A stretch of 64,000 bases of DNA, from positions 62,001-126,000 of the forward strand of contig NIVC01002623.1 in assembly GCA_002269645.1 (NCBI GenBank), read 5' to 3'. Below the pieces are notes generated by a model. The model saw only the letters and a program-made list of their open reading frames with translations. It was not told where the DNA came from and searched no databases. The stretch comes from Macrostomum lignano (lineage: Eukaryota). This document shows positions 15,201 through 59,868 of this stretch, in pieces (within the stretch, counting starts at the first letter, position 1; each line of letters starts with the position of its first letter). The position numbers were made by a program, and so were the translations under genes.

Positions 15201-16040
15201 CGTGTCTCTTGCTGTTGATTGACAGCCGTCCGTGCTCCAGGGGCATTGTGAAAGAGTAGGCAGCTTTGAATCCACCCAGTGAGTGACTTTGCACCTTCTA
15301 CGGCCTCAACTCATGCTCCCCCCTTGCCCGCCCGCTCCCAGGTGAAAATCTGGTTTCAGAACCATCGCTACAAGTGCAAGCGCGCCTCCAAGGACAAGAG
15401 CGGCGGCGGCGGCGGCGGCGGCGGCGACACCAGCAGCCTGAACACGTCCAAGGACTCGAACTCCAGCTCGGGCGGCCACAACCACCGCTCGCCCAAGGCC
15501 GGCGGGCCGCACGTGAAAAGTGAAAAATCCGGCGGCGGACATCCGCAGCACCAGCTGCACCATCAGCACCAGCTGCAGCACCATCCCGGCTCTGCTTCGT
15601 CTATCGATCGGGCCGCGGCCGCTGCGGCTGCTGCAGCGGCTGCCGCGGCAGCTGCCGCCGCCTCTGGAGACCTCGCCGGCGGAGGAGCTGGAGGCGTCAG
15701 CGGCGCCGGCAGCGGCGGAGCCGGGCAGCTGGGCCTGGAGCACCATCACCTGCACCACCACCTGCACCACAAGCAGACGGGCGACGGCAAGCTGTCGGAG
15801 AACAGCGGCCTGTCCACCCCGCCGGAGTTCACTGCCACAACGTCGCCGCACTTCGGCCACCACCTGCAGCAGCAGCAGCAGTTGGCTCAGCAGCAGCAGC
15901 AGCAGCACCCCCACGCGCAGCAGCTGATGCAGCAGCACCAGATGCATCACCCGATGCACCACCCTGGAGCCGCGGCCGCCGCAGCCGCCGGCGCCGCCGC
16001 TTTCCCAATGCTCGGCGCCTCCAGGCAGGGCGTCTGGTAG
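9259..16040 (+). CDS. Nkx2-1: NK2.1/scarecrow-type homeobox transcription factor, 426 aa; exons 9259-9565, 12490-12764, 15342-16040
   Basis: N-terminus MSLSP...SFRVTDLL is a TN/eh1 motif. DPRFAT|MSRLMG matches the Nkx2.1 exon junction. Homeodomain [44 protein letters not shown]|[14 protein letters not shown] has the NK2-diagnostic Tyr54. C-terminal GVW*. GT-AG introns 9566-12489 (phase 1) and 12765-15341 (phase 0) keep the frame (1281 nt). Confidence 0.95.
9640..10550. repeat. 34-bp minisatellite CTGTCTACCCTCTACATATCCTCTCTTATCTCC(G/T) in NK2.1 intron 1
   Basis: About 27 units, switching from the CCG to the CCT variant along the array. Confidence 0.97.
12790..13540. repeat. 25-bp minisatellite TTTAGATCTGAGAGTGACACCATGT in NK2.1 intron 2
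   Basis: About 30 units starting about 25 nt after the donor. Confidence 0.97.
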
Positions 16041-30080: not shown

Positions 30081-30521
30081 TATTTGAATCACTTCGAAAT
30101 TAGAAACAGATTGTGAGTAATTTTTAGTGATATCTTGCCAAGCTTTTTAATAAAAAAACTGGGAGAGGCTCACTTCCATGGCTTCTGTGTTCCCTGCCTG
30201 AGTTCTTTGGAAAGCCATCAAACTGCAAATAACTTTCACCAGTCCAGTTTCTGGACACTGCGACACCACACGTCAGCACCGACTTTGTCCCGTTGTTAGA
30301 ACAAGTTCCCAACTTTTTCTGCCATTTAAACAAAGGAGAATTCACAAAAACACCGGGGCTACAGGGCCAAATAAGCGAGCAAGTTGGGACTGCGTACGGC
30401 GGCACTTCAGGGCCGAGAGTGGGGCCGGCGCCGCGTGCTGGACAAGGCTGGACTCGAGCCTGCTTGTCAGCGGCACTGCCCGACTGTGCTTGGGATGCCG
30501 GCTTTGTGCAGCTGGGTGCTC

Positions 30522-31135
30522 AACTGAGGATCTGGGAGGCTGGCTCAGCAACTGAGGATCTGGGAGGCTGGCTCAGCAACTGAGGATCTGGGAGGCTGGC
30601 TCAGCAACTGAGGATCTGGGAGGCTGGCTCAGCAACTGAGGATCTGGGAGGCTGGCTCAGCAACTGACACTCTGGGAGGCTGGCTCAGCAACTGAGGATC
30701 TGGAAGGCTGGCTCAGCAACTGAGGATCTGGGAGGCTGGCTCAGCAACTGAGGATCTGGGAGGGCGGCGGTGGCCCAGCAGCTGAGGATCTGGGAGGCTG
30801 GCTCAGCAACTGACACTCTGGGAGGCTGGCTCAGCAACTGACACTCTGGGAGGCTGGCTCAGCAACTGAGGATCTGGGAGGCTGGCTCAGCAACTGAGGA
30901 TCTGGGAGGGCGGCGGTGGCCCAGCAGCTGAGTATCTGGGAGGCTGGCTCAGCAATTGAGGATCTGGGAGGCTGGCCCAGCAACTGAGGATCTGGGAGGC
31001 TGGCCCAGCAATTGAGGATCTGGGAGGCTGGTCCAGCAACTGAGGATGTGGGAAGCTGGCCCAGCAACTGAGGATCTGGGAGGCTGGCCCAGCAACTGAG
31101 GATCTGGGAGGCTGGCTCAGCAACTGCAGCTCCAG
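30522..31135. repeat. 28-bp minisatellite GAGGATCTGGGAGGCTGGC(T/C)CAGCAACT, copy A
   Basis: About 21 units; same family as 36472-38510. Confidence 0.95.
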
Positions 31136-33148: not shown

Positions 33149-36100
33149 TCACGGCCGCGCATCCGCAGCCAGCAGGACCTGGACGTCTCCGAATATCGCA
33201 GCCTCAGCGTCTTCGTCCCGCAGAGCCGCGAACTCCCGCGCCAGCCGCTCCAGGCGGTCGCTGCCGCCGCCGTCGCCGAGGCCGAGCAGCACCTGCGGAA
33301 TGTCGACGTAGAAGTCGCCGAGCGGCGAGCGAAGCCGGTCCTCGGCGCTGCTCACTGCAAAGCGCGCGTTCGGGCGGCCCGCGAGCCGCGGCGCAAGTCG
33401 CTCGGCCAGTCTTGGCTCGGGGTCAACCAAGGTCACGCCGCCGGACGGGCCCACCGTGTCGCAGTAGAAATCGAGCAGCGGGGCGAAGCCGCAGCCCAGC
33501 TCGAGCACCTGCTGGCCTGGCAGCGGGGGAGCGTCAAGAAAGCATCCGGTTTTGTGCTGTTACCCAATGTAGCATCAGGCAGGGACCGGGCTCTGCATGC
33601 CGGTAGCAGGAGATAGATCATGACTCTCACTGTATGACCTCTGGAGTGACCTCTGTCAATCATTATGACTCTCACGGGATGACCTCTGGAGTGACCTCTG
33701 TCAATCATTATGACTCTCACGGGATGACCTCTGGAGTGACATCTGTCAATCATCATGACTCTCACTGTATGACCTCTGAAGTGATCTCTGTCAATCATCA
33801 TGACTCTCACTGTATGACCTCTGGAGTGACCTCTGTCAATCATCATGACTCTCACTGTATGACCTCTGGAGTGATCTCTGTCAATCATCATGACTCTCAC
33901 TGTATGACCTCTGGAGTGACCTCTGTCAATCATCATGACTCTCACTGTATGACCTCTGGAGTGATCTCTGTCAATCATCATGACTCTCACGGGATGACCT
34001 CTGGAGTGACCTCTGTCAATCATCATGACTCTCACTGTATGACCTCTGGAGTGATCTCTGTCAATCATCATGACTCTCACGGGATGACCTCTGGAGTGAC
34101 CTCTGTCAATCATCATGACTCTCACTGTATGACCTCTGGAGTGATCTCTGTCAATCATCATGACTCTCACGGGATGACCTCTGGAGTGATCTCTGTCAAT
34201 CATCATGACTCTCACGGGATGACCTCCGGAGTGACCTCTGGCAATCATCATGACTCTCACGGGATGACCTCCGGAGTGACCTCTGTCAATCATTATGACT
34301 CACGGGATGACCTCTGGAGTGACCTCTGTCAATCATCATGACTCTCACGGGATGACCTCTGGAGTGACCTCTGTCAATCATCATGACTCTCACGGGATGA
34401 CCTCTGGAGTGACCTCTGTCAATCATCATGACTCTCACTGTATGACCTCCGGAGTGACCTCTGTCAATCATCATGACTCTCACGGGATGACCTCCGGAGT
34501 GACCTCTGTCAATCATTATGACTCACGGGATGACCTCTGGAGTGACCTCTGTCAATCATCATGACTCTCACGGGATGACCTCCGGAGTGACCTCTGGCAA
34601 TCGTCATGACTCTCACGGGATGACCTCCGGAGTGACCTCTGTCAATCATTATGACTCACGGGATGACCTCTGGAGTGACCTCTGTCAATCATCATGACTC
34701 TCACGGGATGACCTCTGGAGTGATCTCTGTCAATCATCATGACTCTCACGGGATAACCTCTGGAGTGATCTCTGTCAATCATCATGACTCTCACTGTATG
34801 ACCTCTGGAGTGATCTCTGTCAATCATCATGACTCTCACTGTATGACCTCTGGAGTGACCTCTGTCAATCATCATGACTCTCACTGTATGACCTCTGGAG
34901 TGATCTCTGTCAATCATCATGACTCTCACTGTATGACCTCTGGAGTGACCTCTGTCAATCATCATGACTCTCACTGTATGACCTCTGGAGTGATCTCTGT
35001 CAATCATCATGACTCTCACGGGATGACCTCTGGAGTGACCTCTGTCAATCATCATGACTCTCACGGGATGACCTCTGGAGTGACCTCTGTCAATCATCAT
35101 GACTCTCACGGGATGACCTCTGGAGTGACCTCTGTCAATCATCATGACTCTCACTGTATGACCTCTGGAGTGATCTCTGTCAATCATCATGACTCTCACT
35201 GTATGACCTCTGGAGTGACCTCTGTCAATCATCATGACTCTCACTGTATGACCTCTGGAGTGATCTCTGTCAATCATCATGACTCTCACTGTATGACCTC
35301 TGGAGTGACCTCTGTCAATCATCATGACTCTCACTGTATGACCTCTGGAGTGATCTCTGTCAATCATCATGACTCTCACGGGATGACCTCTGGAGTGACC
35401 TCTGTCAATCATCATGACTCTCACTGTATGACCTCTGGAGTGATCTCTGTCAATCATCATGACTCTCACGGGATGACCTCCGGAGTGACCTCTGGCAATC
35501 ATCATGACTCTCACGGGATGACCTCTGGAGTGACCTCTGTCAATCATTATGACTCACGGGATGACCTCTGGAGTGACCTCTGTCAATCATCATGACTCTC
35601 ACTGTATGACCTCTGGAGTGACCTCTGGCAATCATCATGACTCTCACGGGATGACCTCCGGAGTGACCTCTGTCAATCATTATGACTCACGGGATGACCT
35701 CTGGAGTGACCTCTGTCAATCATCATGACTCTCACGGGATGACCTCTGGAGTGACCTCTGTCAATCATCATGACTCTCACGGGATGACCTCTGGAGTGAC
35801 CTCTGTCAATCATCATGACTCTCACGGGATGACCTCCGGAGTGACCTCTGTCAATCATCATGACTCTCACGGGATGACCTCCGGAGTGACCTCTGTCAAT
35901 CATCATGACTTTCACGGGATGACCTCCGGAGTGATCTCTGTCAATCATCATGACTCTCACTGTATGACCTCCGGAGTGACCTCTGTCAATCATCATGACT
36001 CTCACGGGATGACCTCCGGAGTGACCTCTGGCAATCATCATGACTTTCACGGGATGACCTCCGGAGTGATCTCTGTCAATCATCGTGACCATTTGCAGAA

Positions 36101-36327
36101 TGGGCAGCTCCCAAGATCAAGTAAATGAAAGCAATCTGAGCAGAGGCTGGCACCGGCCCCTTCACTCCCACGCACCTTCTGCTAGACCGGCTTTCTTCAG
36201 AAATTTGATCATCCTATCCTGCTTCAGCTCGAATTCGCGCCTCAGGATGTCCTCCATGGCAAAGAAGTCGTGGTGGTGAGGGTCGCTATGAGCCTTGATG
36301 CCTCGGCTGCTGGTGGCTGTGCGACAT
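33149..36327 (-). pseudogene. Tandem paralog of the methyltransferase, with an in-frame 324-bp deletion in exon 2 and a disrupted first ATG frame; exons 36176-36327 (open from ATG 36257) and 33149-33516
   Basis: Same intron position and phase as 39747-41452. The ATG at 36327 reads MSHSHQQPRHQGS* out of frame with HHHDFFAMEDILRREFELK. Exon 2 fuses SSAED directly to RLRSPLGDFYVD. A 149-aa ORF from ATG 36257 stays open, so a truncated coding gene is not excluded. Confidence 0.65.
33615..36085. repeat. 45-bp minisatellite GACTCTCACGGGATGACCTCTGGAGTGACCTCTGTCAATCATCAT filling the intron of the methyltransferase paralog
   Basis: About 55 units with occasional 43-bp variants. Confidence 0.97.
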
Positions 36328-36471: not shown

Positions 36472-38510
36472 GAATCTGGGAGGGCGGCAGCGGTGGCCCA
36501 GTAACTGAGGATCTGGGAGGCTGGCCCAGCAACTGAGGATCTGGGAGGCTGGCCCAGCAATTGAGGATCTGGGAGGCTGGCCCAGCAACTGAGGATCTGG
36601 GAGGCTGGCCCAGCAACTGACACTCTGGGAGGCTGGCCCAGCAACTAAGGATCTGGGAGGCTGGCTTAGCAACTGAGGATCTGGGAGGCTGGCCCAGAAA
36701 CTGAGGATTTGGGAGGCTGGACCAGCAATTGAGGATCTGGGAGGCTGGCCCAGCAACTGACACTCTGGGAGGCTGGCCCAGCAACTGACACTCTGGGAGG
36801 CTGGCCCAGCAACTAAGGATCTGGGAGGCTGGCCCAGAAATTAAGGATCTGGGAGGCTGGCCCAGCAATTGAGGATCTGGGAGGCTGGCCCAGCAACTGA
36901 GGATCTGGGAGGCTGGCCCAGCAACTGACACTCTGGGAGGCTGGCCCAGCAACTAAGGATCTGGGAGGCTGGCTTAGCAACTGAGGATCTGGGAGGCTGG
37001 CCCAGAAACTGAGGATTTGGGAGGCTGGCCCAGCAATTGAGGATCAGGGAGGCTGGCCCAGCAACTCAGGATCTGGAAGGCTGGCCCAGCAACTGAGGAT
37101 CTGGGAGGCTGGCCCAGCAACTGAGGATCAGGGAGGCTGGCCCAGCAACTGAGGATCAGGGAGGCTGGCCCAGCAACTGAGGATCTGGAAGGCTGGCCCA
37201 GCAACTGAGGATTTGGGAGGCTGGCCCAGAAACTGAGGATCAGGGAGGCTGGCCCAGCAACTGAGGATCTGGGAGGCTGGCCCAGCAATTCAGGATCTGG
37301 GAGGCTGGCCCAGCAACTGAGGATCTGGAAGGCTGGCCCAGCAACTGACACTCTGGGAGGCTGGCCCAGCAACTGAGGATCAGGGAGGCTGGCCCAGCAA
37401 CTGAGGATCAGGGAGGCTGGCCCAGCAATTGAGGATCAGGGAGGCTGGCCCAGCAACTGAGGATCAGGGAGGCTGGCCCAGCAACTGAGGATCAGGGAGG
37501 CTGGCCCAGCAATTGAGGATCTGGGAGGCTGGCCCAACAACTGAGGATCAGGGAGGCTGGCCCAGCAACCGAGGATCAGGGAGGCTGGCCCAGCAATTGA
37601 GGATCTGGGAGGCTGGCCCAACAACTGAGGATCAGGGAGGCTGGCCCAGCAACTGAGGATCAGGGAGGCTGGCCCAGCAATTCAGGATCTGGGAGGCTGG
37701 CCCAGCAACTGAGGATCTGGAAGGCTGGCCCAGCAACTGAGGATCTGGGAGGCTGGCCCAGCAACTGAGGATCTGGGAGGCTGGCCCAGCAACTGAGGAT
37801 CAGGGAGGCTGGCCCAGCAACTGAGGATCAGGGAGGCTGGCCCAGCAACTGAGGATCTGGGAGGCTGGCCCAGCAACTGAGGATCTGGGAGGCTGGCCCA
37901 GAAACTGAGGATCAGGGAGGCTGGCCCAGCAACTGAGGATCTGGGAGGCTGGCCCAGCAATTCAGGATCTGGGAGGCTGGCCCAGCAACTGAGGATCTGG
38001 AAGGCTGGCCCAGCAACTGACACTCTGGGAGGCTGGCCCAGCAACTGAGGATCAGGGAGGCTGGCCCAGCAACTGAGGATCAGGGAGGCTGGCCCAGCAA
38101 TTGAGGATCAGGGAGGCTGGCCCAGCAACTGAGGATCAGGGAGGCTGGCCCAGCAACTGAGGATCAGGGAGGCTGGCCCAGCAATTGAGGATCTGGGAGG
38201 CTGGCCCAACAACTGAGGATCAGGGAGGCTGGCCCAGCAACTGAGGATCAGGGAGGCTGGCCCAGCAATTGAGGATCTGGGAGGCTGGCCCAACAACTGA
38301 GGATCAGGGAGGCTGGCCCAGCAACTGAGGATCAGGGAGGCTGGCCCAGCAATTCAGGATCTGGGAGGCTGGCCCAGCAATTGAGGATCTGGGAGGCTGG
38401 CCCAGCAACTGGGGATCAGGGAGGCTGGCCCAGCAACTAAGGATCTGGGAGGCTGGCCCAGCAATTGAGGATCTGGGAGGCTGGCCCAGCAATTGAGGAT
38501 CTGGGAGGTG
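36472..38510. repeat. 28-bp minisatellite GAGGATCTGGGAGGCTGGCCCAGCAACT, copy B
   Basis: About 72 units. Confidence 0.97.
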
Positions 38511-38546
38511 GCGGGGGTCGGGCTAACGATTTCTCTAAACTGAAAA

Positions 38547-38847: not shown

Positions 38848-39737
38848 GTCCCAGTCACTCCTCATCAATCCCAGTCACTCCTCACCAATCCCAGTCACTC
38901 CTCACCAATCCCAGTCACTCCTCACCAATCCCAGTCACTCCTCACCAATCCCAGTCACTCCTCACCAATCCCAGTCACTCCTCACCAATCCCAGTCACTC
39001 CTCACCAATCCCAGTAACTCCTCACCAATCCTAGTCACTCTCATCAATCCTAGTCACTCTCATCAATCCCAGTCACTCCCCAGCAATCCCAGTCACTCCT
39101 CACCAATCCCAGTCACTCCTCACCAATCCCAGTCACTCCTCACCAATCCCAGTCACTCCTCACCAATCCCAGTCACTCCTCACCAATCCCAGTCACTCTC
39201 ATCAATCCCAGTCACTCCTCACCAATCCTAGTCACTCTCATCAATCCCTGTCACTCCTCACCAATCCCTGTCACTCCTCACTAATCCCTGTCACTCCTCA
39301 CTAATCCCTGTCACTCCTTAGCAATCCCTGTCACTCCTCACCAATCCCAGTCACTCCTCACCAATCCTAGTCACTCTTATCAATCCCAGTCACTCCCCAG
39401 CAATCCCAGTCACTCCTCAGCAATCCCAGTCACTCCCCAGCAATCCCAGTCACTCTTCAGCAATCCCAGTCACTCCTTAGCAATCCCAGTCACTCCCCAG
39501 CAATCCCTGCCACTCTCCAGCAATCCCAGTCACTCCCCAGCAATCCCAGTCACTCCCCAGCAATCCCAGTCACTCCTCAGCAATCCCAGTCACTCTTCAG
39601 CAATCCCAGTCACTCCTCAGCAATCCCAGTCACTCTCCAGCAATCCCAGTCACTCTTCAGCAATCCCAGTCACTCCTTAGCAATCCCAGTCACTCCCCAG
39701 CAATCCCTGCCACTCTCCAGCAATCCCAGTCACTCCC
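38848..39737. repeat. 20-bp minisatellite CCCAGTCACTCC(T/C)CA(C/G)CAAT, copy B
   Basis: About 44 units abutting the methyltransferase stop codon. Confidence 0.95.
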
Positions 39738-39746
39738 CCGCTGAAG

Positions 39747-41452
39747 TCACGGACGCTCGGCCGCCACCAGGAGGTTAATGTTGGAGAACAGCTCGGCTTC
39801 GGGGTCTCCCTGCTGCAGCGTCGGCAGCCCCTGGCCCAGCAGCTCGGCGACCTCCTCCTTGGTGATGCGGCCGAGGCTGGCCAGCTCATGCAGCGAGTGC
39901 TTCACGTACGCGTCGACGTAGAAGTCGCCGAGCGGCGAGCGAAGCCGGTCGTGCAGGACGAAGGCGTCCCGAAGGCGCACCTCGAAGCCCGCGGCGGCGA
40001 GCGCGGAGCAGCAGCGGGCGGTGACGGGCGAGGCGGCGGGCCGCAGGAGGTCGGCGAGACGCGCCTGGACGGCCAGGGCGGCCGGGTTGGCGGCCTCGGA
40101 GGCGAACAGCTGCAGGGTGTCGTGAATGAAGTCCAGGATCACCAGGCGGCCGCCAGGACGCAGAGCCGAGCGGACGGCGGCCAGGGCGGTGGCGGTGTCG
40201 GCCAGGTGGTGGTACACGTTGGCCATCACGGCCAGGTCGAAGGCGCCTCCTGCCGGCAGCACCGACGCCAGGTCCTCGGCGCTGCTCACTGCAAAGCGCG
40301 CGTTCGGGCGGCTCGCGAGCCGCGGCGCAAGGCGCTCGGCCAGTCTTGGCTCCGGGTCAACCAAGGTCACGCCGCCGGACGGGCCCACCGTGTCGCAGTA
40401 GAACTCGAGCAGCGGGGCGAAGCCGCAGCCCAGCTCGAGCACCTGCTGGCCTGGAAGCGGAATGAAGGTGAAGGGTGAGAATAGTAGGGGCTGTATCTTA
40501 GTGGTCCAGCGGCGCTCGTAGATGCCAGCGGCCCAGGCTCGATTCCAAGTGCAGTCAACATTAATTTGGGGCTAAATTGCTTCGCACCTGCTCAGGGGAG
40601 TTGGCGGAATGGGCAGCGATAACGTGCGCCATGGTGCACACAGCCCCCTGACCCCTAATAGAAAGGTGAGAATAGGTTGTGTGTCCCGATTGGGTGAGCA
40701 CAGCATGCCTGTGCAGCATACAGGGGGACCCAAAGGCACTTTCCAATTCCATCTGTCAACGGAAAACCCGCAGTTAGGAATGCCCATTCTGCCTCTCCGG
40801 ATCTCAGGCCCGACAATTTCTATCAACTCGACCGCGACCTGAGGGCGGACAAAGCAACCATCCACCTTCTGGACTCTTCGTAGGGGGGCCGCGCTGCGGA
40901 CACCAGCACCACCGAAGCTCCCTGTGTGACAGCGCAGCACCAGCTGGATGGTCAGGTGCACCAGGTTATCCTGGATGGATCAAGTGTGCCAGGTGTGTCC
41001 TGGATGGGTCAGGTGTACCAGGTGTGTCCTGGATGGGTCAAGTGTGCCAGGGGTGCCCTGGATGGGTCAGGTGTACCAGGTGTGTCCTGGATGGGTCAGG
41101 TGTACCAGGTGTGTCCTGGATGGGTCAGGTGTACCAGGTGTGTCCTGGATGGGTCAGGTGTACCAGGTGTGTCCTGGATGGGTCAGGTGTACCAGGTGTG
41201 TCCTGGATGGGTCAGGTGTACCAGGTGTGTCCTGGATGGGTCAGGTGTGCCAGGTGTGTCCTAGATAGGTCAGGTGTGTCCTGGATGGGTCAGGTGTGTA
41301 GAAATCTGCATTTCCTTTTCACTCTCACCTTCTGCTAGACCGGCTTTCTTAAGAAAGTCAGTCAGCCTGTCCTTCTTCAGTTCAAAGTCGCGCTTTAAGA
41401 TGTCTTCGAAGTCAAAAAAGTCGTGTTGATGCTGCTGGTGACTCTGCGACAT
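39747..41452 (-). CDS. Class I SAM-dependent methyltransferase (UbiE/Methyltransf_11/31-like, resembling prokaryotic PRK08317-type proteins), 275 aa; exons 41329-41452, 39747-40450
   Basis: Motif I GQQVLELGCG, VGPSGGVTLVD, FDLAVMANVYHHL and ALRPGGRLVILD. A phase-1 GT-AG intron (40451-41328) joins ...KAGLAE|GQQV in frame (828 nt). Confidence 0.87.
40487..40557 (+). mobile_element. Degenerate tRNA-derived element (SINE head or tRNA pseudogene)
   Basis: GGGGCTG-TATCTTAGTGG (A box, 1 mismatch) and GGCTCGATTCC at 40536-40546 (B box, 1 mismatch) at tRNA spacing over 71 nt. D and T stems are broken, so it is not a functional tRNA. Confidence 0.4.
40945..41298. repeat. 29-bp minisatellite GGATGGGTCAGGTGTACCAGGTGTGTCCT in the methyltransferase intron
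   Basis: About 12 units. Confidence 0.95.
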
Positions 41453-44486: not shown

Positions 44487-44886
44487 CTATAGAGCAAAGC
44501 TTTTGCCCACAGTCTTGTCAATGACGCCGTCGTCCACGGAGTTGACGCGCGCATCGTTATAGTCGCATTTTTCCACAACGAAAATATCGTCCCCAATAGA
44601 GCTGTCGCCGCCGTCAGTCTCGGACTCGCATTCGCCCTCCTCTCGATCCGATTCCGTTCTGTCCGGCAGGGCGGCTGCCGACGCGGCCGAGCAGGCCATC
44701 TCTTCGAGTTTTGCCTTATCGAATTGCACGCTTCCGTCGGTGCGGACAGGGGAGATAACGACTGCGGGGGCGTCGGCGATTGGCTGCTGAGCATCGGGAG
44801 CTTCCACAGGCGCAGTAGCTGCCGCCGATGATGTGCCGCTGCTGCAGTACTGATCGATCATCCTGTTGGTTGTGGCGAATTAGAAA

Positions 44887-44930
<44 letters not shown>

Positions 44931-47900
44931 CGAGCCTGCTATGAGTCTCACGTACCTGGAAAAAGTTCGATAGGCCACCGGGCTCGGGCTGACGGTCACG
45001 CGGCGTCGTTTTGGAATCGGCGAGCTGTCATCGCGGCGACGATCACGCGGACTTCGAGGACTCCGAGGACTGCGCGGACAGCGGCGGCCGCGGTGACGAC
45101 TGCGGCTGCGACTGCGGCTTCTACCAGCATCGGCCTTGTCGCTTCTGCCTCGACGTTTGCTGCCGTCATCGGCATTACGGGATCTACCGGAGTGCCGTCT
45201 GGACGACGATCGGGACCGGGACCGGCGCTGCCGACTGCCGCTGTTTCCATAGTAACGACAGTCCCGAACTGGGCGCCTCGAGCTGCGCGATCGGCCGCCG
45301 CGGTCAACAGCAGCAGGCTGGCCGTGGCGGCCGTCAGCGGATGGAATTTGGTGCGCCAGCTGCGCCGAGCGGAACTCGGCCTCGGTGAGCGGCCGGCCGC
45401 CCGTCGGGCCAGCTGAGTAGATCGGCGCGCCCTGATGGGGCAGCGGGTAGGCCAGGCCGGGCTGGCAGTAGTATCCCAGCTGCTGGTAGGCAGCAGCGTA
45501 CGCCATCTGGGCCTGCTGGTAATACTGCACGGCGTAGTCGGCCGCTGTGAAATACCCGCCATTGGCCGCCTGCCATGCGTAGCACTGCGCCGTCTGCTGC
45601 TCGTCCATCGACGCTGGTGGCGGCGGCGGCGTTGGGCCTTTGGACTCGGTCGGAGACGACGGCACTGTGGAGTCTGCGACGGTCGACTGGTTGCGCTGAG
45701 GGGGTGGGGTGGGTGTATCGAAGAGTCAGCCAACTTATGGGGTGTTGTGCAACCCTTCAGGCTGTGTGCAACCCTTCAGGCTGTTGTGTAACCCTTCAGG
45801 CTGTTGTGTAACCCTTCAGGCTGTTGTGTAACCCTTCAGGCTGTTGTGCAACCCTTCAGGCTGTTGTGTAACCCTTCAGGCTGTTGTATAACCCTTCAGG
45901 CTGTTGTGCAACCCTTCAGGCTGTTGTGTAACCCTTCAGGCTGTTGTGCAACCCTTCAGGTGGAAGTTTAACCCTTCAGGCTACTGTGTAACACTTTAGG
46001 TGACATTTCAGATTGTGCAACCCTCAGGCCGTTCTGTGACCCCTTCAGATGGGTTTTGAACACTTTAGACTGTTGTGTAACCCTTCACAATGTTTTCTAA
46101 CTCTTCAGGCTGTTTAAAACCTTCACGCTGCTGGTTAAACCTTCAGGTTGCTATAAGTGTTCCGATAACTTTTGTAAAAAATCTTATGGTAGCTGTTTAA
46201 AACCTTCAGGTTGTATAATTTATAGAAATCATTTTGGACTGTTGGCAAACAGCAAGCGCACTACTCTACTGTAAGTAGAAAGGCGAACCTGATTGTCAGC
46301 AATGAACCTGGCGACCGCTTCGCCCAGATTCCGGTTCGGCACTAGGCAGTCAACGTCGGCCACTTTGTCCCGACAGGCCGGGCAGCGGTGCAGGCTGGGG
46401 CTGCCGGCCTCAAATAGGGCGGCGTGGAGGCAGCGCTTGCAGGCGGTGGCGCCGCAGCAGATGAGGATGTGCGGCTCCTGCATCAGCTGGCGGCACAGGA
46501 GGCAGCGCATGGCGCTCGGCACCGATTGGTCGGAGTCCGCGCGGCACTCAGCGGCCCTCGAGCCGTCGGCAGCGTCAGCGGCGGCGACGACAACGACGGT
46601 AGACTGCGCAGGCGGCGACTGGCTAGCGGCGACTATCCCGGCGTCGGGAGACTGCAAGTCGCTATCGACTTCTTGGTCGGCTCGGCGGGACCGGGGATTT
46701 TCCTCGGCGCTGAACGGCCGCTTCTCCTTCTTGCCCTGCGCCTTCGCCTCGCTTCACGGGTGGGGGCGGGGTGCAGGCTGCAGCGGACACTGGGAGTCTC
46801 ACACCTGGACAGGGGGTGGGGTTGGCCCACTGGGAGTCCCACACAGGGACAGGGGGTGGGGTTGGCCCACTGGGAGTCCCACACAGGGACAGGGGGTGGG
46901 GTTGGCCAATCGGCGGGCACTGGGAGTCTCACACAGGGACAGGGGGTGGGGTTGGCCAATCGGCGGGCACTGGGAGTCCCACACAGGGACAGGGGGTGGG
47001 GTTGGCCAATCGGCGGGCACTGGGAGTCCCACACAGGGACAGGGGGTGGGGTTGGCCAATCGGCGGACACTGGGAGTCCCACACCGGGACAATGGGACAG
47101 ACCATCCCAAAAAGCAAGCCGGCCACTCACGCGTCCATCTTGGGCACGGCGTATCGGCCGTCCTTCATCAGGTAGGCGCCGTCCACTTTGGTCGGCAGGA
47201 TCTGCAGGAAGTCGCTGGGGATGCCGCTCGGCCGCTGCACCCTGGCCGGGTCCAGTCGATTGCCGGAGCAGTCGGTGAGGCCCGGACACTGGCGGGCCCA
47301 GTGCTGGCCGGACACGCGGCACCGGTTGCAGGTGTAGCCGGCGGGCGGCGGACCGTCCGGTCGGGGCTGCTGGCTGCGGAAGCTGCGGCGGGGCGAGGAT
47401 GAAGGAAGAATATGAGAGATTTAATCGCTGTAGGAACTGCTCAGATTGACTCATGGGAATTGTTAGATTCCAGTGCCATTGGGTATCCCTCAGATGCCAG
47501 TGTCATAGGGAATCCCTCAGATGCCAGTGTCATGGGGAATCCCTCAGATGCCAGTGTCATGGGGAATCCCTCAGATGCCAGTGTCATGGGGAACCCCTCA
47601 GATGCCAGTGTCATGGGGAATCCCTCAGATGCCAGTGTCATGGGGAATCCCTCAGATGCCAGTGTCATGGGGAATCCCTCAGATGCCAGTGTCATGGGGA
47701 ATCCCTCAGATGCCAGTGTCATGGGGAATCCCTCAGATGCCAGTGTCATGGGGAACCCCTCAGATTCCAGTGTCATTTTTCAGATGACAAGTGTCAATGA
47801 GAAACTTTGGTCTTTTAAATGTCAGAAAAAGCATACATAGATTTTGATTAAAATTTAAACTGGAGGAAACAGAAAGGGACTTCTTAAACTTTAGGTACGT

Positions 47901-50900
47901 AAAATACTTCCGATTTTTCTGAAACTTTTGCCAGAGTCTTAGAGGCTGTTCAAAATGATAGTAAAGCAAAAAAACTGCAAAAAATTACCTTCACAGTTAA
48001 CAGGAGGTCGATTTGTTAATAGTCTACATAATTAGTGATAATTTGATGCAAGCAGTTTCGGAAATTCAGAGAATTGTATGTTTAAAAATTAAACTTTTTA
48101 CTATATTTATTTCTACTAATCTACGTTGTCTTCTCCATTTTAAAGGTAAGTACGGCTGCTGATATCAATTAAACATAGTTTGATAGGATTATAGTTTTTC
48201 TCCATGGAGGTGTTTGATAACTTGCTGAATTTTTAATTTAAATAAGCTTCATTGCAATCCCCCCCTGGACCCCCTCAGTCTCCAAATTTATCTACCTAAT
48301 CTTCAATAGACCCCCATGCCTCTATTGAAGTTTAGGTACGTGAAATCATTTCCTATGAAGATTCTCCCCACCCTAAAACCCCCCATTCCCCATGCCCCGG
48401 TGGTTGGCTTTAAGCTACAAAAAATGAAGTTCAAATTTGAAATCAGCACCATCAAAAACCTCTGTGGAGACAAAATTATGATCCTATCAAAACTGCAACT
48501 ATTTTATCTACCTAAAGTTCAACAAGTCCAAGAAGTGACGGTGAGAAAACTCACCGAACTGAGTCGTACTTCTGCGTTGACTGTCGAATAATGAAATCGA
48601 GTTTCTCATCCTCCGTGAGGCCCTCCATCATGGCGAGCTCCTCCTCTTGTTGCTGCTTGGTTTCGTGAAATGGCTGAAACATGGCGTAATAGAGTGGCAA
48701 TAAGGAAAAGTTCATTTCCTAATCTCCAAAGAGTCACCGAGACTGCTGTCTATGGCTGTAACTTCACACTCGTCTTGATGAAAAGTTGAAAACGTGGAAC
48801 CTAAGTGAAACCTACATAGAACCTACGGGAAAACGATACCTATGTAAACACAGGTGAAACAGGAAAGAAGTGACTCTAGAGACGACTCTAAAACGAGATG
48901 TCACGGTACAAGTCGCAAAAAAAGCCGTCAAAAAGTCGTCAGAGAATCGATTGCAAGCGACTCTGGGGCCGTAGAGTCCTACCTGAGACATGCTGGAGTT
49001 GCTGTAGAATCACTGAGTTGCGTCTGAAGCGCATCCAACACAACACAGCCGTCCAACACAACGACTGTTGGACGACTTTTTCGCGACTCTTTTACGATTC
49101 TGTAACTCACGTGACGCGCTCGCGACTCAACAGCCGCCTCTCCGTAGCGTTACAGTCGGTTGAGTCGTTTAAAAGTCAATAGTGAGTTGCTTGCAATGAC
49201 TATTTAGCGATTCTTGTCACGGGCATGAGAGCCAATCCCCAAAGATGATATAAATGAGCTTGGATTGCTTTGCATTCTCTGTTGAGTCTCGTCCTACTTA
49301 CTGCAAAGCTACCGGATTGGCAAACGTACAAGATAAAAAAGATTTGAAACTAAAATCTGCATCTTTGACTTGAAAATTTGGAGATTCCTTTACCGAATCA
49401 TTATTCGGTAAAGGAACTGAAGCAATGGCTTCTTCTTCTTCAATTTACTCACGCATCAATCATATCATGCACCCCAAGATATCCCAATGGGCTAATCACC
49501 TATATTGGCCCGTTTGTGTGTAAATTTTCGCTCAAATCTGATGAACAAATACAGAGCTTGAGGAGTGTCTAAAACCTTTTGACTGTGCCAAGGTAGAAAT
49601 TCACAAATATGGTACACCCTGTATGCCCAAAACCCTCCTATTATTGTTATTATTATTAAACGTTAAGCCCTTGTTCCAGGACACCCGTTGCATCTGGGAG
49701 AGACATAAGGGGCAGAGAAATAGGATTATTTTCAGAAGTCCTTGACGCGGGCGCCACTATAAACAGTGCCTCTGTCTGTCTGGTCTGTCTGGGGTTGATC
49801 TGCCCTCTCCTTTGAGCCAGCAACAGGATCAAACTGGCTGCAGCCAAAACAACAGAAGCCATTTATAATAGAGACTGGTGCGCGAGTACCAAGCGAAAGC
49901 AGTCGATGAAGCATGCGTTTTCTCTGTGCTAATAGACAGCAAATTCAAGTGCACAGCCTCATGCCTTACACTGGCCTCAGACTGATAGCAGTTCTGCCTC
50001 TGCGGCGACTTTGATCTTTGTCGATGCTTTGAAGAGTACCGCCTCGAAGATCCCGGAGCTTCCAGTCTGGGCGTACGAGCGACCAACACCTGGGTGAACT
50101 CCTGCAGTAGCTCGGCATCGCTGCTGTACACTGCAATGCACCCAAATACAACTGTGGCCTGAGCTGCTGTACACTGCAATGTAATCTACACCGATATTCT
50201 TAGCTGCAATTCCCTAGCCCGATATTCTCAGCTGCAATTCCCCAGCCCGATATTCTCAGCTGCAATTCCCCAGCCCGAGATTCTCAGCTGCAATTCCCCA
50301 GCCCGATATTCTCAGCTGCAATTCCCCAGCCCGAGATTCTCAGCTGCAATTCCCCAGCCCGATATTCTCAGCTGCAATTCCCCAGCCCGAGATTCTCAGC
50401 TGCAATTCCCCAGCCCGATATTCTCAGCTGCAATTCCCCAGCCCGAGATTCTCAGCTGCAATTCCCCAGCCCGATATTCTCAGCTGCAATTCCCCAGCCC
50501 GAGATTCTCAGCTGCAATTCCCCAGCCCGATATTCTCAGCTGCAATTCCCCAGCCCGATATTCTCAGCTGCAATTCCCCAGCCCGATATTCTCAGCTGCA
50601 ATTCCCCAGCCCGATATTCTCAGCTGCAATTCCCCAGCCCGAGATTCTCAGCTGCAATTCCCCAGCCCGATATTCTCAGCTGCAATTCCCCAGCCCGATA
50701 TTCTTGGCTGCAATTCCCCAGCCCGAGCTCACCTTTGCCATCTTCGGCAGACAGCTGCAAGTCGTAGTCCGCACCTGTGAGTCCGCACTTGTCCCGAATG
50801 GCAGCCTTGAGATCTCGCACGCTCAGTGCGGAGCCGCTGATGCGCACGGCGTCCCAGCTCAGGCCGGACTTGAACCGATAGTAGATCACGGACACGCCGC

Positions 50901-56500: not shown

Positions 56501-59500
56501 GCTGCCTCAGTAGCTTCTCCCGGTCCATCAGTAGCTTCTCCCGCTGCCTCAGTAGCTTCTCCCGCTGCCTCAGTAGCTTCTCCCGTTGCCTCAGTAGCTT
56601 CTCCCGCTGCCTCAGTAGCTTCTCCCGCTGCCTCAGTAGCTTCTCCCGCTGCCTCAGTAGCTTCTCCCGCTGCCTCAGTAGCTTCTCCCGTTGCCTCAGT
56701 AGCTTCTCTCAGTCCATCAGTAGCTTCCCCCGTTGCCTCAGTCGCTTCTCCCGGTCCATCAGTAGCTTCTCCCGTTGCCTCAGTAGCTTCTCCCACTGCT
56801 TCAGTAGCTTCTCCCGGTCAATCAGTAGCTTCTCCCGTTGCCTCAGTAGCTTCTCTCAGTCCATCAGTAGCTTCTCCCGTTGCCTCAGTCGCTTCTCCCG
56901 GTCCATCAGTAGCTTCTCCCGTTGCCTCAGTAGCTTCTCCCGGTCAATCAGTAGCTTCTCCCGTTGCCTCAGTAGCTTCTTCCGTTGCCTCAGTAGCTTC
57001 TCCCGCTGCCTCAGTAGCTTCTCCCGTTGCCTCAGTAGCTTCTCCCGCTGCCTCAGTAGCTTCTCCCGCTGCCTCAGTAGCTTCTCCCGCTGCCTCAGTA
57101 GCTTCTCCCGGTCAATCAGTAGCTTCTCCCGTTGCCTCAGTAGCTTCTCTCAGTCCATCAGTAGCTTCCCCCGTTGCCTCAGTCGCTTCTCCCGGTCCAT
57201 CAGTAGCTTCTCCCGTTGCCTCAGTAGCTTCTCCCACTGCTTCAGTAGCTTCTCCCGGTCAATCAGTAGCTTCTCCCGTTGCCTCAGTAGCTTCTCTCAG
57301 TCCATCAGTAGCTTCTCCCGTTGCCTCAGTAGCTTCTCCCGGTCCATCAGTAGCTTCTCCCGTTGCCTCAGTAGCTTCTCCCGCTGCCTCAGTAGCTTCT
57401 CCCGCTGCCTCAGTAGCTTCTCCCGTTGCCTCAGTAGCTTCTCCCGCTGCCTCAGTAGCTTCTCCCGCTGCCTCAGTAGCTTCTCCCGCTGCCTCAGTAG
57501 CTTCTCCCGCTGCCTCAGTAGCTTCTCCCGTTGCCTCAGTAGCTTCTCTCAGTCCATCAGTAGCTTCCCCCGTTGCCTCAGTCGCTTCTCCCGGTCCATC
57601 AGTAGCTTCTCCCGCTGCCTCAGTAGCTTCTCCCGCTGCCTCAGTAGCTTCCCCCGCTCAGCACCTTATCTCACTACTCTCCACCTCAAACACCATACAA
57701 CCCTACCTTCCCTACCACAAGCCAGTCAGAATTGACAAGCAGAACTCACCGACATGCCGTTAAGTATGGTGACATTGACAACCACAGGCAGGCCAGTAAA
57801 GTACATCGGCTGGCTGCAGTACGGCCACATATAGGGACAGTCGGTGAAGTCAATGTAGCTGGGGGACAGGCTGGCCTGAGGCTTGTAGGCCCGCAGCAGC
57901 TGGTAGGCTCGCAGCAGGTCCAGCTTGCCGTGGCCCTGCTCAAACATGTTAGCGTCCGGGAGCCGCCTGGCCGAAGCCAGCAGCGCCTGCTTGATGGAAG
58001 CCGGGTTGATGACCGGCCCCCGGTGCAGCACGGCGCTGTACAGCAGGGCGACGGCTCCGGCAACCACCGGGCTGGCCACGGAGGTGCCGCTGAGGGCCCG
58101 GCAGGTCTCGCGCAGTCCGGAGCCGCGCATCCCCGCGCCGTAGGTGACAATGTCCGGCTTGAGCCGGCCGTAGCCATCCGGCAGCTCCCAGGTGGTCATG
58201 CCGCGTGAGCTGAATCTGGCGACCCGATCGTCGAAGTCGATGCCGCCGACTCCGACGACGTCCATCTGGTCGGCGGGGTTGTTCAGGGTGCCGTACAGAG
58301 GGCCGTCGTTGCCGATGGCGGACACCAGCACGACGCCGTTGCTGGTCAGCTCCCACACCTTGTCAACGAATGGCCGGTCGAGAAAGTCCGGCCCGCCGAT
58401 GCTCAGGTTGATCACGTGGATTCGGCGAAGCATGGCGTAGTTGAAGGCGTCCAGGAACCAGGACGTGTACGACACCTGGGGAGGGTGGGGTTGATGTCGA
58501 GTCGGGAACCAAGTGGTAGACAACTGGGGGAGAGTCGGGAACCAAGTGGTGGACAACTGGGGGAGAGTCGGGAACCAAGTGGTGGACAACTGGGGGAGAG
58601 TCGGGAACCAGGTGGTGGACAATTGGGGGAGAGTCGGGAACACTCAGGTGGTGGACAACTGGGGAGAGTCGGGAACCAAGTGGTAGACAACTGGGGGAGA
58701 GTCGGGAACCAAGTGGTGGACAACTGGGGGAGAGTCGGGAACCAAGTGGTGGACAACTGGGGGAGAGTCGGGAACCAGGTGGTGGACAATTGGGGGAGAG
58801 TCGGGAACACTCAGGTGGTGGACAACTGGGGAGAGTTGGGAACCAGGTGGTGGACAACTGGGGGAGATTCGGGAACCAAGTGGTGGACAACTGGGGGAGA
58901 GTCGGGAACCAAGTGGTGGACAACTGGGGGAGAGTCGGGAACCAAGTGGTGGACAACTGGGGGAGAGTCGGGAACCAAGTGGTGGACAACTGGGGGAGAG
59001 TCGGGAACATTCAGGTGGTGGACAACAGTCAGAAACCAGTGAGGTTCAGCAGCCTCAGGAAACCAAAAAAGGGAAACGCTTCTTAGCGCACCTGCGCATT
59101 GGTGAAGACCCTGAAGATGTACAAATCGGCGTCGGGCGCGAAGCCCAGACAGTCGCGGTAGCTGGCGATGACGCCGGCCACGAATGTGCCGTGGCCGAGG
59201 CCGTCGTCCAGCGTCTTCTCGTTTGTCCAATTGCTGCGCTCCTTGACTCGGCCGCGTTTGAAGTGCCCGTGTCCGGCCGCCAGCCCGGTGTCGAAGACGG
59301 ACACCCGGACGCCGCGGCCGGAGAAGCCGACGCTCCACAGCACGTCGGCCTGCAGCGCCGAGGTGATTTGAGTGGGTGCCGGCCGGACCCCAGCGCCGAG
59401 GCCGCCGCTGACGATCGGCGCGTGGCTGAAGCTGCGCCGACTGTGCCAGCGCGGCAGTTCGACGTCCTCGTCGGCGGGGCCGAAGCCGTGCAGAGTCCGC

Positions 59501-59868
59501 GTGACTCGCCGCTGCGGCGTCACGGAGCGAACGGCGTCGCTGGCCAGCAGGCGCCGGGTGGCCTCGGCGGTGAGCGCCGGCGTACAGTTGAAGGCCAGGC
59601 GGAGCAGGTCAAAGTCGCTGGGGTGCTGGGCGGCAGGATTGTCACGTCGGACGGCGCGCCAGGCGCAGGGCAGACCGGCCAGGGCGCCGGAGAGCAGGCA
59701 GGCGCGGGCCTCGTTGCCATGGTAACCGGCGTAGCGGACTATGTACTCGCGCGGCACGGTTTCGGTGGAGAATTCGTAGCGCAGCTCAGAGTCGGTCTGG
59801 TTGCCGCCGCACGCGTAGATCCCTGTTGCCATGGCAACGCACAGCAGGGAGCACAGCGTGAGACGCAT
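53536..59868 (-). CDS. MBTPS1: Membrane-bound transcription factor site-1 protease (S1P/SKI-1, subtilase), 1049 aa; exons 59092-59868, 57750-58475, 55774-56217, 54919-55338, 53536-54318
   Basis: Signal peptide; prodomain ending RRVTRTLH; catalytic motifs [17 protein letters not shown] and GTSVASP; S1P-specific [54 protein letters not shown] and GDSNC; C-terminal TM helix and basic tail. Four phase-0 GT-AG introns give 3150 nt. Confidence 0.97.
54342..54850. repeat. 31-bp minisatellite CAAAATCTCACCCCAATGAAACTACAGGATT in MBTPS1 intron 4
   Basis: About 16 units. Confidence 0.95.
55424..55740. repeat. Two inverted short arrays of an approximately 22-bp unit (TCACTGATTGAGATCCCATCC) in MBTPS1 intron 3
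   Basis: 55424-55520 is the reverse complement of 55645-55740. Confidence 0.8.
56325..57660. repeat. 21-bp minisatellite GCCTCAGTAGCTTCTCCCG(C/T)T in MBTPS1 intron 2
   Basis: About 63 units; source of the 480-aa SVASPAA ORF. Confidence 0.97.
58497..59027. repeat. 33/34-bp minisatellite GTGGTGGACAACTGGGGGAGAGTCGGGAACCAA in MBTPS1 intron 1
   Basis: About 16 units. Confidence 0.95.

Follow-up and report, generated by a model that had tools for sequence, protein, structure and literature searches.

Does the genome of the flatworm Macrostomum lignano hold a methyltransferase gene that came from a bacterium? The question is raised by a spliced gene at positions 39747 to 41452, on the minus strand, of a 64,000-nucleotide stretch of DNA (the window), which matches M. 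lignano contig NIVC01002623.1 (assembly GCA_002269645.1) at 100% identity. An earlier note, made from the letters of this DNA, had described a prokaryote-type enzyme that was laterally acquired, gained an intron and was then duplicated. The gene is real, spliced and expressed. Its product belongs from end to end with a family of bacterial methyltransferases, and an old horizontal transfer from a bacterium into the Macrostomum lineage appears to be its most likely origin. This reading is based on distribution and similarity and is held with moderate confidence.

The gene consists of two exons. Exon 1 (41329..41452) opens with the ATG at 41452..41450 and codes for residues 1-41 and the first base of G42, providing the N-terminal helices before motif I. 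It is followed by a spliceosomal intron of 878 nt (40451..41328), which is of the GT..AG type, in phase 1 and bounded by the donor G/GTGAGA and the acceptor TTCCAG/G. Exon 2 (39747..40450) encodes residues 42-275 and closes with the stop codon TGA (39749..39747). It contains motif I (VLELGCG), D73, D101, D113, the sequence LRPGGRLVILD, a helical lid and the C-terminal strand LLVAAERP. Splicing of 41452..41329 to 40450..39747 gives an open reading frame (ORF) of 828 nt, or 275 amino acids and a stop, and an in-frame TGA lies two codons 5′ of the ATG. The intron falls between E41 and G42, and the G49-C50-G51 glycine loop of motif I (residues 45-51) follows 7 residues on.

The product of splicing agrees at 100% identity with BOX15_Mlig033925g1 of M. 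lignano, deposited in GenBank as a “hypothetical protein, partial”, and the exon 1 product matches GenBank protein P0001 exactly from residue 9 onward. The annotation of BOX15_Mlig033925g1 has a splice junction identical to 41329/40450. As the GenBank annotation of M. lignano was built from genome-guided RNA-seq transcript assemblies (PMC5730564), this junction has transcript support, of the kind that the earlier note had proposed to seek in RNA-seq data. The description given there, a 275-residue class I methyltransferase with a single phase-1 intron just before motif I, is borne out by the splicing, by the Pfam matches given below and by the GenBank protein.

When 1.84 billion representative proteins were searched exhaustively with phmmer, only five matches fell below 1e-30, all of them M. 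lignano gene models or L003, a 902-bp Logan contig (SRR31628403) that encodes a relative 54-60% identical to the flatworm protein. Three two-domain proteins come next (1e-21 to 1e-19), followed by a cloud of single-domain proteins from 4e-15. The sources of only 30 clusters out of the best 150 matches were looked up, and all named proteins among these 30 are bacterial: Sorangium, Polyangiaceae, metagenome-assembled genomes (MAGs) of Myxococcota or Deltaproteobacteria, and Glycomyces. The rest are metagenomic. The genomic contexts of four relatives were inspected, and all four are prokaryotic operons.

These relatives are methyltransferases of 260-280 amino acids, such as WP_012235332.1 (Sorangium cellulosum), WP_100448951.1 (Glycomyces xiaoerkulensis) and MBK9366967.1 (a Deltaproteobacteria MAG), together with an abundant 262-residue metagenomic family labelled “UbiE” by JGI. 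In full-length BLASTP alignments, the flatworm protein is 31-32% identical to proteins of 262-281 amino acids over about 250 residues, with the N-terminal helices and the last strand both included. A profile built from 19 bacterial relatives gives it 162 bits across positions 14-266 of 268, a score inflated somewhat by a seed that was picked from matches to the query; bacterial proteins outside the seed reach the same level (161-171 bits). The alignment is collinear from end to end, takes in the lid and the terminal strand, and has a score typical of members. The C-terminal 121 amino acids alone score 30.6 bits, versus at most 9.0 for 1000 shuffles. The claim that the layout is bacterial rather than animal is thereby upheld. 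The exon 1 product aligns to profile positions 14-40, and exon 1, although much less GC-rich (GC content at third codon positions, GC3, 0.585), is therefore no addition from the host.

The features common to the bacterial family (proteins of the P0032, P0058, P0141 and P0106 type) and the flatworm protein are the N-terminal helices, motif I, D73, D113, the LRPGGRLV strand, a helical lid with the pattern G(R/x)(I/V)(T/S)xxE, and a C-terminal strand ending in (A/G)(E/R)RP. The flatworm gene differs in its identity of about 26-32% to the family, its spliceosomal intron, its host-like codon bias and the residues F-A-P after the GCG of motif I. Among the bacterial relatives, one (L009, Logan SRR22198344) adjoins ThcOx/nitroreductase, B12-radical-SAM and P450 genes in an arrangement that resembles a cluster for ribosomally synthesized and post-translationally modified peptides (RiPPs). 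Another (L005, JGI 3300013006) has an EVE-domain gene overlapping it in two distinct metagenome contigs.

The earlier note had named a widespread metazoan family as the finding that would overturn its reading. Among the 1.84 billion representative proteins, no animal ortholog was found outside Macrostomum. The sole animal protein to surface in any search is the thiol S-methyltransferase TMT1A/METTL7A, at 38 bits and E 1.2e-4 against the query. TMT1A is a class I enzyme of the Methyltransf_11 type and passes the Pfam Ubie_methyltran cutoff, as the flatworm protein does. It reaches 61 bits against the bacterial profile, in the core only; it differs in having no homologous lid or C-terminus, and it is 104th of 105 sequences by distance to the query.

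The methyltransferase gene is part of the animal's genome. Neither contamination nor chimerism can explain it, since it shares its contig with RBBP6 and MBTPS1, the gene order is repeated on an 807-kb contig, and the spliceosomal intron carries a minisatellite of the host type. RBBP6 (44487..50892, minus strand) is upstream on the same strand and encodes a 756-residue product with a DWNN domain, a CCHC knuckle-like exon and a RING-like exon; the CxxC...CxxC pattern of the last is visible in the ORF translation and has no Pfam call. The exons of MBTPS1 (membrane-bound site-1 protease; 57726-59868, minus strand) are situated further upstream, as two ORFs with Peptidase_S8, MBTP1_N and MBTPS1_3rd domains. 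Contig NIVC01000337.1, of 807 kb, shows the same order of RBBP6, a methyltransferase of 278 amino acids and a truncated copy of 176. The DNA flanking the locus there is 88-97% identical to the window, and the intron occupies the same place with a length of ~1.4 kb, versus 878 nt in the window. Such assembly redundancy is expected, given the hidden polyploidy of M. lignano (PMC5730564). The intron minisatellite has a 29-bp unit and 11.6 copies (40944..41277, Tandem Repeats Finder).

A bacterial contaminant or an assembly chimera would fit the high exon GC content (0.72) and the bacterial type of the best matches. The probability of this is vanishingly small, given a spliceosomal intron with host minisatellites and a transcript-supported junction, the flanking of the gene by RBBP6 and MBTPS1 on one contig, and the presence of the whole arrangement on an independent contig at 88-97% identity. 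Furthermore, a close copy occurs in no bacterial genome among the GTDB species genomes. The earlier statement that the gene sits among bona fide animal genes is therefore confirmed by this linkage, the second contig and the spliced intron.

The Pfam models Methyltransf_12, 25, 23, 11 and 31 all match above their cutoffs (E 3e-15 to 2e-10), with 57 bits for Methyltransf_12, and Ubie_methyltran (PF01209) scores 31.7 bits against a cutoff of 20.1. The motifs of a class I S-adenosylmethionine (SAM)-dependent methyltransferase are present as V45-L-E-L-G49-C-G51 followed by D73, and G49, G51, D73 and D113 are invariant or nearly so in alignments of 9 and 79 relatives. The AlphaFold2 model (mean predicted local distance difference test, pLDDT, 77.8; predicted template modelling score, pTM, 0.80) has the alternating strands and helices of the seven-stranded alpha/beta class I fold. 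The Rossmann core is modelled with high confidence, the helical lid (about residues 155-250) with lower confidence, and a terminal strand comes after. A Foldseek search of the PDB gave 893 matches at E <= 0.001. The best 50 of the 893 all have the lidded class I methyltransferase fold (SpnF being a cyclase), and the matches include 3mgg, RebM, TleD, AtmM, SpnL, MitM, PMT and JHAMT, with TM-scores of about 0.45-0.58.

By sequence, the best matches in the PDB are natural-product methyltransferases of Streptomyces, namely MitM (8zc8), NovO (5mgz), RebM (3bus) and CouO (5m58), at E 5e-10 to 5e-6; the 26 chains listed at E < 0.01 include no animal protein. These enzymes are also among the top fold matches and have in common with the flatworm protein the Rossmann core and lid of small-molecule methyltransferases. 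They differ in that the sequence match is limited to query residues 27-151 and the TM-scores are about 0.45-0.5.

UbiE/COQ5 (MenG) and ArsM/AS3MT belong to the same Pfam clan as the flatworm protein, which is above the gathering score of Ubie_methyltran. The NCBIfam models for UbiE/MenG and ArsM score far below their cutoffs, so the protein is an ortholog of neither. For UbiE/MenG/COQ5, NF001240 gives 32.7 bits against 378, NF001244 30.9 against 216 and TIGR01934 26.4 against 158. The arsenite methyltransferase model PRK11873 gives 16.6 bits against 263, in agreement with the earlier exclusion of an AS3MT-type enzyme, and the ArsM selenoprotein models give 28-33 bits against 510-575, over the Rossmann core only. 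The cysteines of the query are C50, C60, C188 and C189. An NCBIfam scan of the query found no curated family near its cutoff, the nearest PRK-derived match being PRK06202 (28 bits against 243) among models that do not include PRK08317, the family named in the earlier note, and in a scan of five bacterial relatives no cutoff was reached by any. As the query and its bacterial relatives fall in no curated NCBIfam family, no function can be transferred from one.

How the gene reached the flatworm is to be weighed against several findings. Apart from the partial source look-up and the choice of profile seed given above, there are points of distance, phylogeny and composition that speak against a bacterial transfer. 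No donor was found among the sequences searched, the best bacterial identity being about 31-35%, and the 185,579 GTDB species genomes contain no close relative, only one chance pattern match of 29% identity. In a neighbour-joining tree of 106 sequences, made without bootstrap or eukaryotic sampling, the flatworm pair is placed on a long branch as sister to an unspecific clade of 36 members. The alien index, which assumes that TMT1A is the best animal match, is 38.5 with the best two-domain bacterial match and 24 with the best single-domain match. The index, proposed as a check in the earlier note, is positive but stays below the classical threshold of 45. With a GC3 of 0.91, exon 2 falls inside the span of the RBBP6 exons (0.65-0.94), and exon 1 has a GC content of 0.455 and a GC3 of 0.585. 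Composition was rejected as a foreign signal, since RBBP6 exons themselves reach a GC3 of 0.94. Lastly, microbial eukaryotes are poorly sampled, and the gene may therefore have had a eukaryotic donor or descend vertically from ancient times. Of the lateral acquisition claimed earlier, the bacterial type, the residence and the lack of an animal ortholog in the searched proteins stand, and the transfer itself is the most likely explanation.

Several of these points would equally suit vertical descent. The gene would then be a class I methyltransferase of ancient eukaryotic origin that evolved fast in Macrostomum and disappeared from almost every animal sampled, and its bacterial look would be a mere product of the far larger bacterial sampling of a universal fold. 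An intron in the conserved domain, a host-like GC3, an identity of only about 31% to any bacterium, an alien index below 45 and a neighbour-joining tree with no specific sister group are all consistent with this. So are the long flatworm branch, with the two flatworm-type sequences only 54-60% identical even in the core, and the presence of animal JHAMT and nematode PMT among the Foldseek matches at similar E-values. However, as far as was checked, no animal protein from outside Macrostomum beats the 150th match (8.5e-10), and TMT1A, the sole animal match, reaches E 1.2e-4 over the Rossmann core only. For the C-terminal lid, homology is specifically with the bacterial family, and many independent losses would be required, including in all other sequenced flatworms. 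Vertical descent is thus considered unlikely.

The distance to any bacterium also bears on the identity of the donor. The flatworm could have received a member of the bacterial-type family from a giant virus, a fungus or a protist, for example a diatom in its diet. Such a source would explain the lack of a close bacterial sequence even though 1.84 billion representatives were searched and metagenomes are very deeply sampled; microbial eukaryotes are undersampled, and giant-virus methyltransferases have the same fold. Against this, the named top matches include no eukaryotic or viral protein, and the viral structural matches are generic and weaker than those in the PDB (E 6e-10, 10-19% identity). 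A non-bacterial donor is accordingly judged quite improbable, and the viral route was set aside because the matches in BFVD are generic and weaker than the PDB matches.

Under the preferred reading of transfer from a bacterium, the source would be the family of 260-280-residue enzymes that combine a Rossmann core with a pair of N-terminal helices, a helical lid and a strand at the C-terminus; its named members belong to Myxococcota (Sorangium, Polyangiaceae) and Actinomycetota. After arrival, the gene would have gained its spliceosomal intron within the conserved domain, at a time when M. lignano had yet to diverge from at least one other species. That an intron was gained, as the earlier note held, agrees with its position within the region homologous to intron-less bacterial genes. 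A tandem duplication downstream of RBBP6, with the flanking minisatellites included, would have followed. The second copy would then have been partly homogenised by gene conversion and have lost residues 102-207. Intron gain, duplication, conversion and deletion are all proposed to precede the separation of the two homeologous loci.

The age of the intron and the constraint on the gene are both informed by L003. Homology in this contig ends exactly at the M. lignano intron position, after a pyrimidine tract and CAG, and the phase is likewise 1. As the intron position is common to both, the intron is older than the split of the two organisms. The exon GC content of L003 is 0.62 versus 0.72 in M. 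lignano. Over 126 codons, the comparison with L003 gives a non-synonymous divergence (dN) of 0.32, a synonymous divergence (dS) of about 1.5 and a ratio of the two (omega) of 0.21, which means long-term purifying selection on the full-length gene. The positions that are invariant or nearly so in 79 relatives (L46, G49, C50, G51, D73, D113, G141 and G142) are all kept. Between the homeologs, exon 2 is 99.1% identical, versus 88-97% for neighbouring DNA. Omega is 0.38 from six differences only (3 synonymous, 3 non-synonymous), and the homeolog dN/dS was rejected as decisive evidence by itself because the differences are too few. L003 also has a likely additional GT donor after ...SEAAKA, at about residue 168, where M. 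lignano has no intron.

The full-length copy would be a functional SAM-dependent small-molecule methyltransferase of M. lignano. Read directly from the sequence, the query has a hydrophilic N-terminus that lacks a signal peptide and a membrane helix, and a cytosolic enzyme is therefore proposed. SAM would be held by motif I (G49, G51), by D73 at the ribose, by D101 at the adenine and by the segment from D113 to N119. The lid (residues about 155-250) would close over a small, probably hydrophobic acceptor, which would be methylated on O, N, C or S.

The gene was duplicated, as had been claimed. The truncated paralog (36327..33149, minus strand) has its intron at the same position and in the same phase as the main copy. 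The ancestral ATG (36327..36325), at which its exon 1 (36176..36327) begins, now leads to a TAG in frame (36288..36286), a frameshifting insertion having intervened. The part homologous to the main copy spans 36278..36176, with the GT of the donor at 36175..36174. The intron (33517..36175) is mostly a 45-bp minisatellite of 55 copies (33617..36089). In exon 2 (33149..33516), residues about 102-207 have been lost in frame at a GACC microhomology, and with them motif II onwards and most of the lid; the C-terminal tail has diverged to about 39% identity with the main copy.

The two copies differ in divergence along their length. Exon 1 (41326-41431 versus 36173-36278) shows 80% nucleotide identity, with a dS of 0.88 and an omega of 0.17, whereas the first 198 bp of exon 2 (40263-40460 versus 33330-33526) are 96.5% identical, with a dS of 0.04. 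This difference indicates a probable recent gene-conversion tract in exon 2, ending near the deletion breakpoint of the paralog. The same deletion is found in the truncated copy on the homeologous contig (P0003), and omega between both truncated copies is 0.74. The second copy looks to be decaying, as a deletion derivative under relaxed constraint, and is predicted to be incapable of acting as an active methyltransferase. The term “domesticated”, which had been applied to the locus, consequently holds for the full-length copy and not for its duplicate. The duplicated unit takes in the 20-bp and 28-bp minisatellites 3′ of each copy. The 20-bp array of the main copy (38849..39736) begins 11 bp past the stop codon. 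A 28-bp array of 72 copies (36494..38512) lies between the gene copies and recurs after the second copy (30521..31126).

Taken further, a bacterial methyltransferase may have been captured by an ancestor of Macrostomum, have gained an intron and host expression signals, and have been kept under purifying selection for a lineage-specific methylation of a dietary, microbial or xenobiotic metabolite. This fuller account is put forward tentatively. Well-documented functional transfers from bacteria to animals are uncommon and, as far as is known, concentrated in a few groups such as bdelloid rotifers, nematodes and arthropods. M. lignano is a model with established transgenesis and is tractable to RNA interference (RNAi). 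If the account is true, it would provide a functional bacteria-to-flatworm transfer in a species open to both techniques. If confirmed, the locus would also offer a dated case in which a coding sequence once bacterial gained an intron and later underwent duplication, gene conversion and decay. No report of the methyltransferase gene, its identifiers or a transfer of this kind in Macrostomum turned up in full-text searches of the literature. GenBank already lists the gene as a hypothetical protein, and it is at present one generic methyltransferase.

The intron of the main copy holds two further stretches. In older models P0002 and P0023, an ORF piece at 40876-40944 (minus strand), ending in IQLVLRCHTGSFGGAG ahead of a GT in phase 1, is joined to exon 2; P0023 also joins the RBBP6 C-terminus to the methyltransferase. 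The piece could be an alternative 5′ exon, part of a read-through transcript or a product of mis-modelling. The older models P0002, P0023 and P0025 were set aside as evidence on account of frameshifts or fusions of neighbouring genes. A tRNA-like stretch at 40493-40565 (plus strand), with A- and B-box-like sequences recognized by eye, occurs once in the window and was not called by ARAGORN or Rfam. It may be the head of a tRNA-derived short interspersed nuclear element (SINE).

Elsewhere in the window, 15279-16040 (plus strand) matches only the last 16 positions of the Homeodomain model, below its threshold (E 4.5e-4; 20.4 bits, cutoff 22.9). This may mark where a homeobox exon ends or be due to chance. 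The window is extremely dense in minisatellites, with 56 Tandem Repeats Finder rows of periods from 7 to 167 bp and arrays of up to 2.5 kb, in introns and in intergenic DNA. Simple and tandem repeats make up 15% of the M. lignano genome (PMC5730564).

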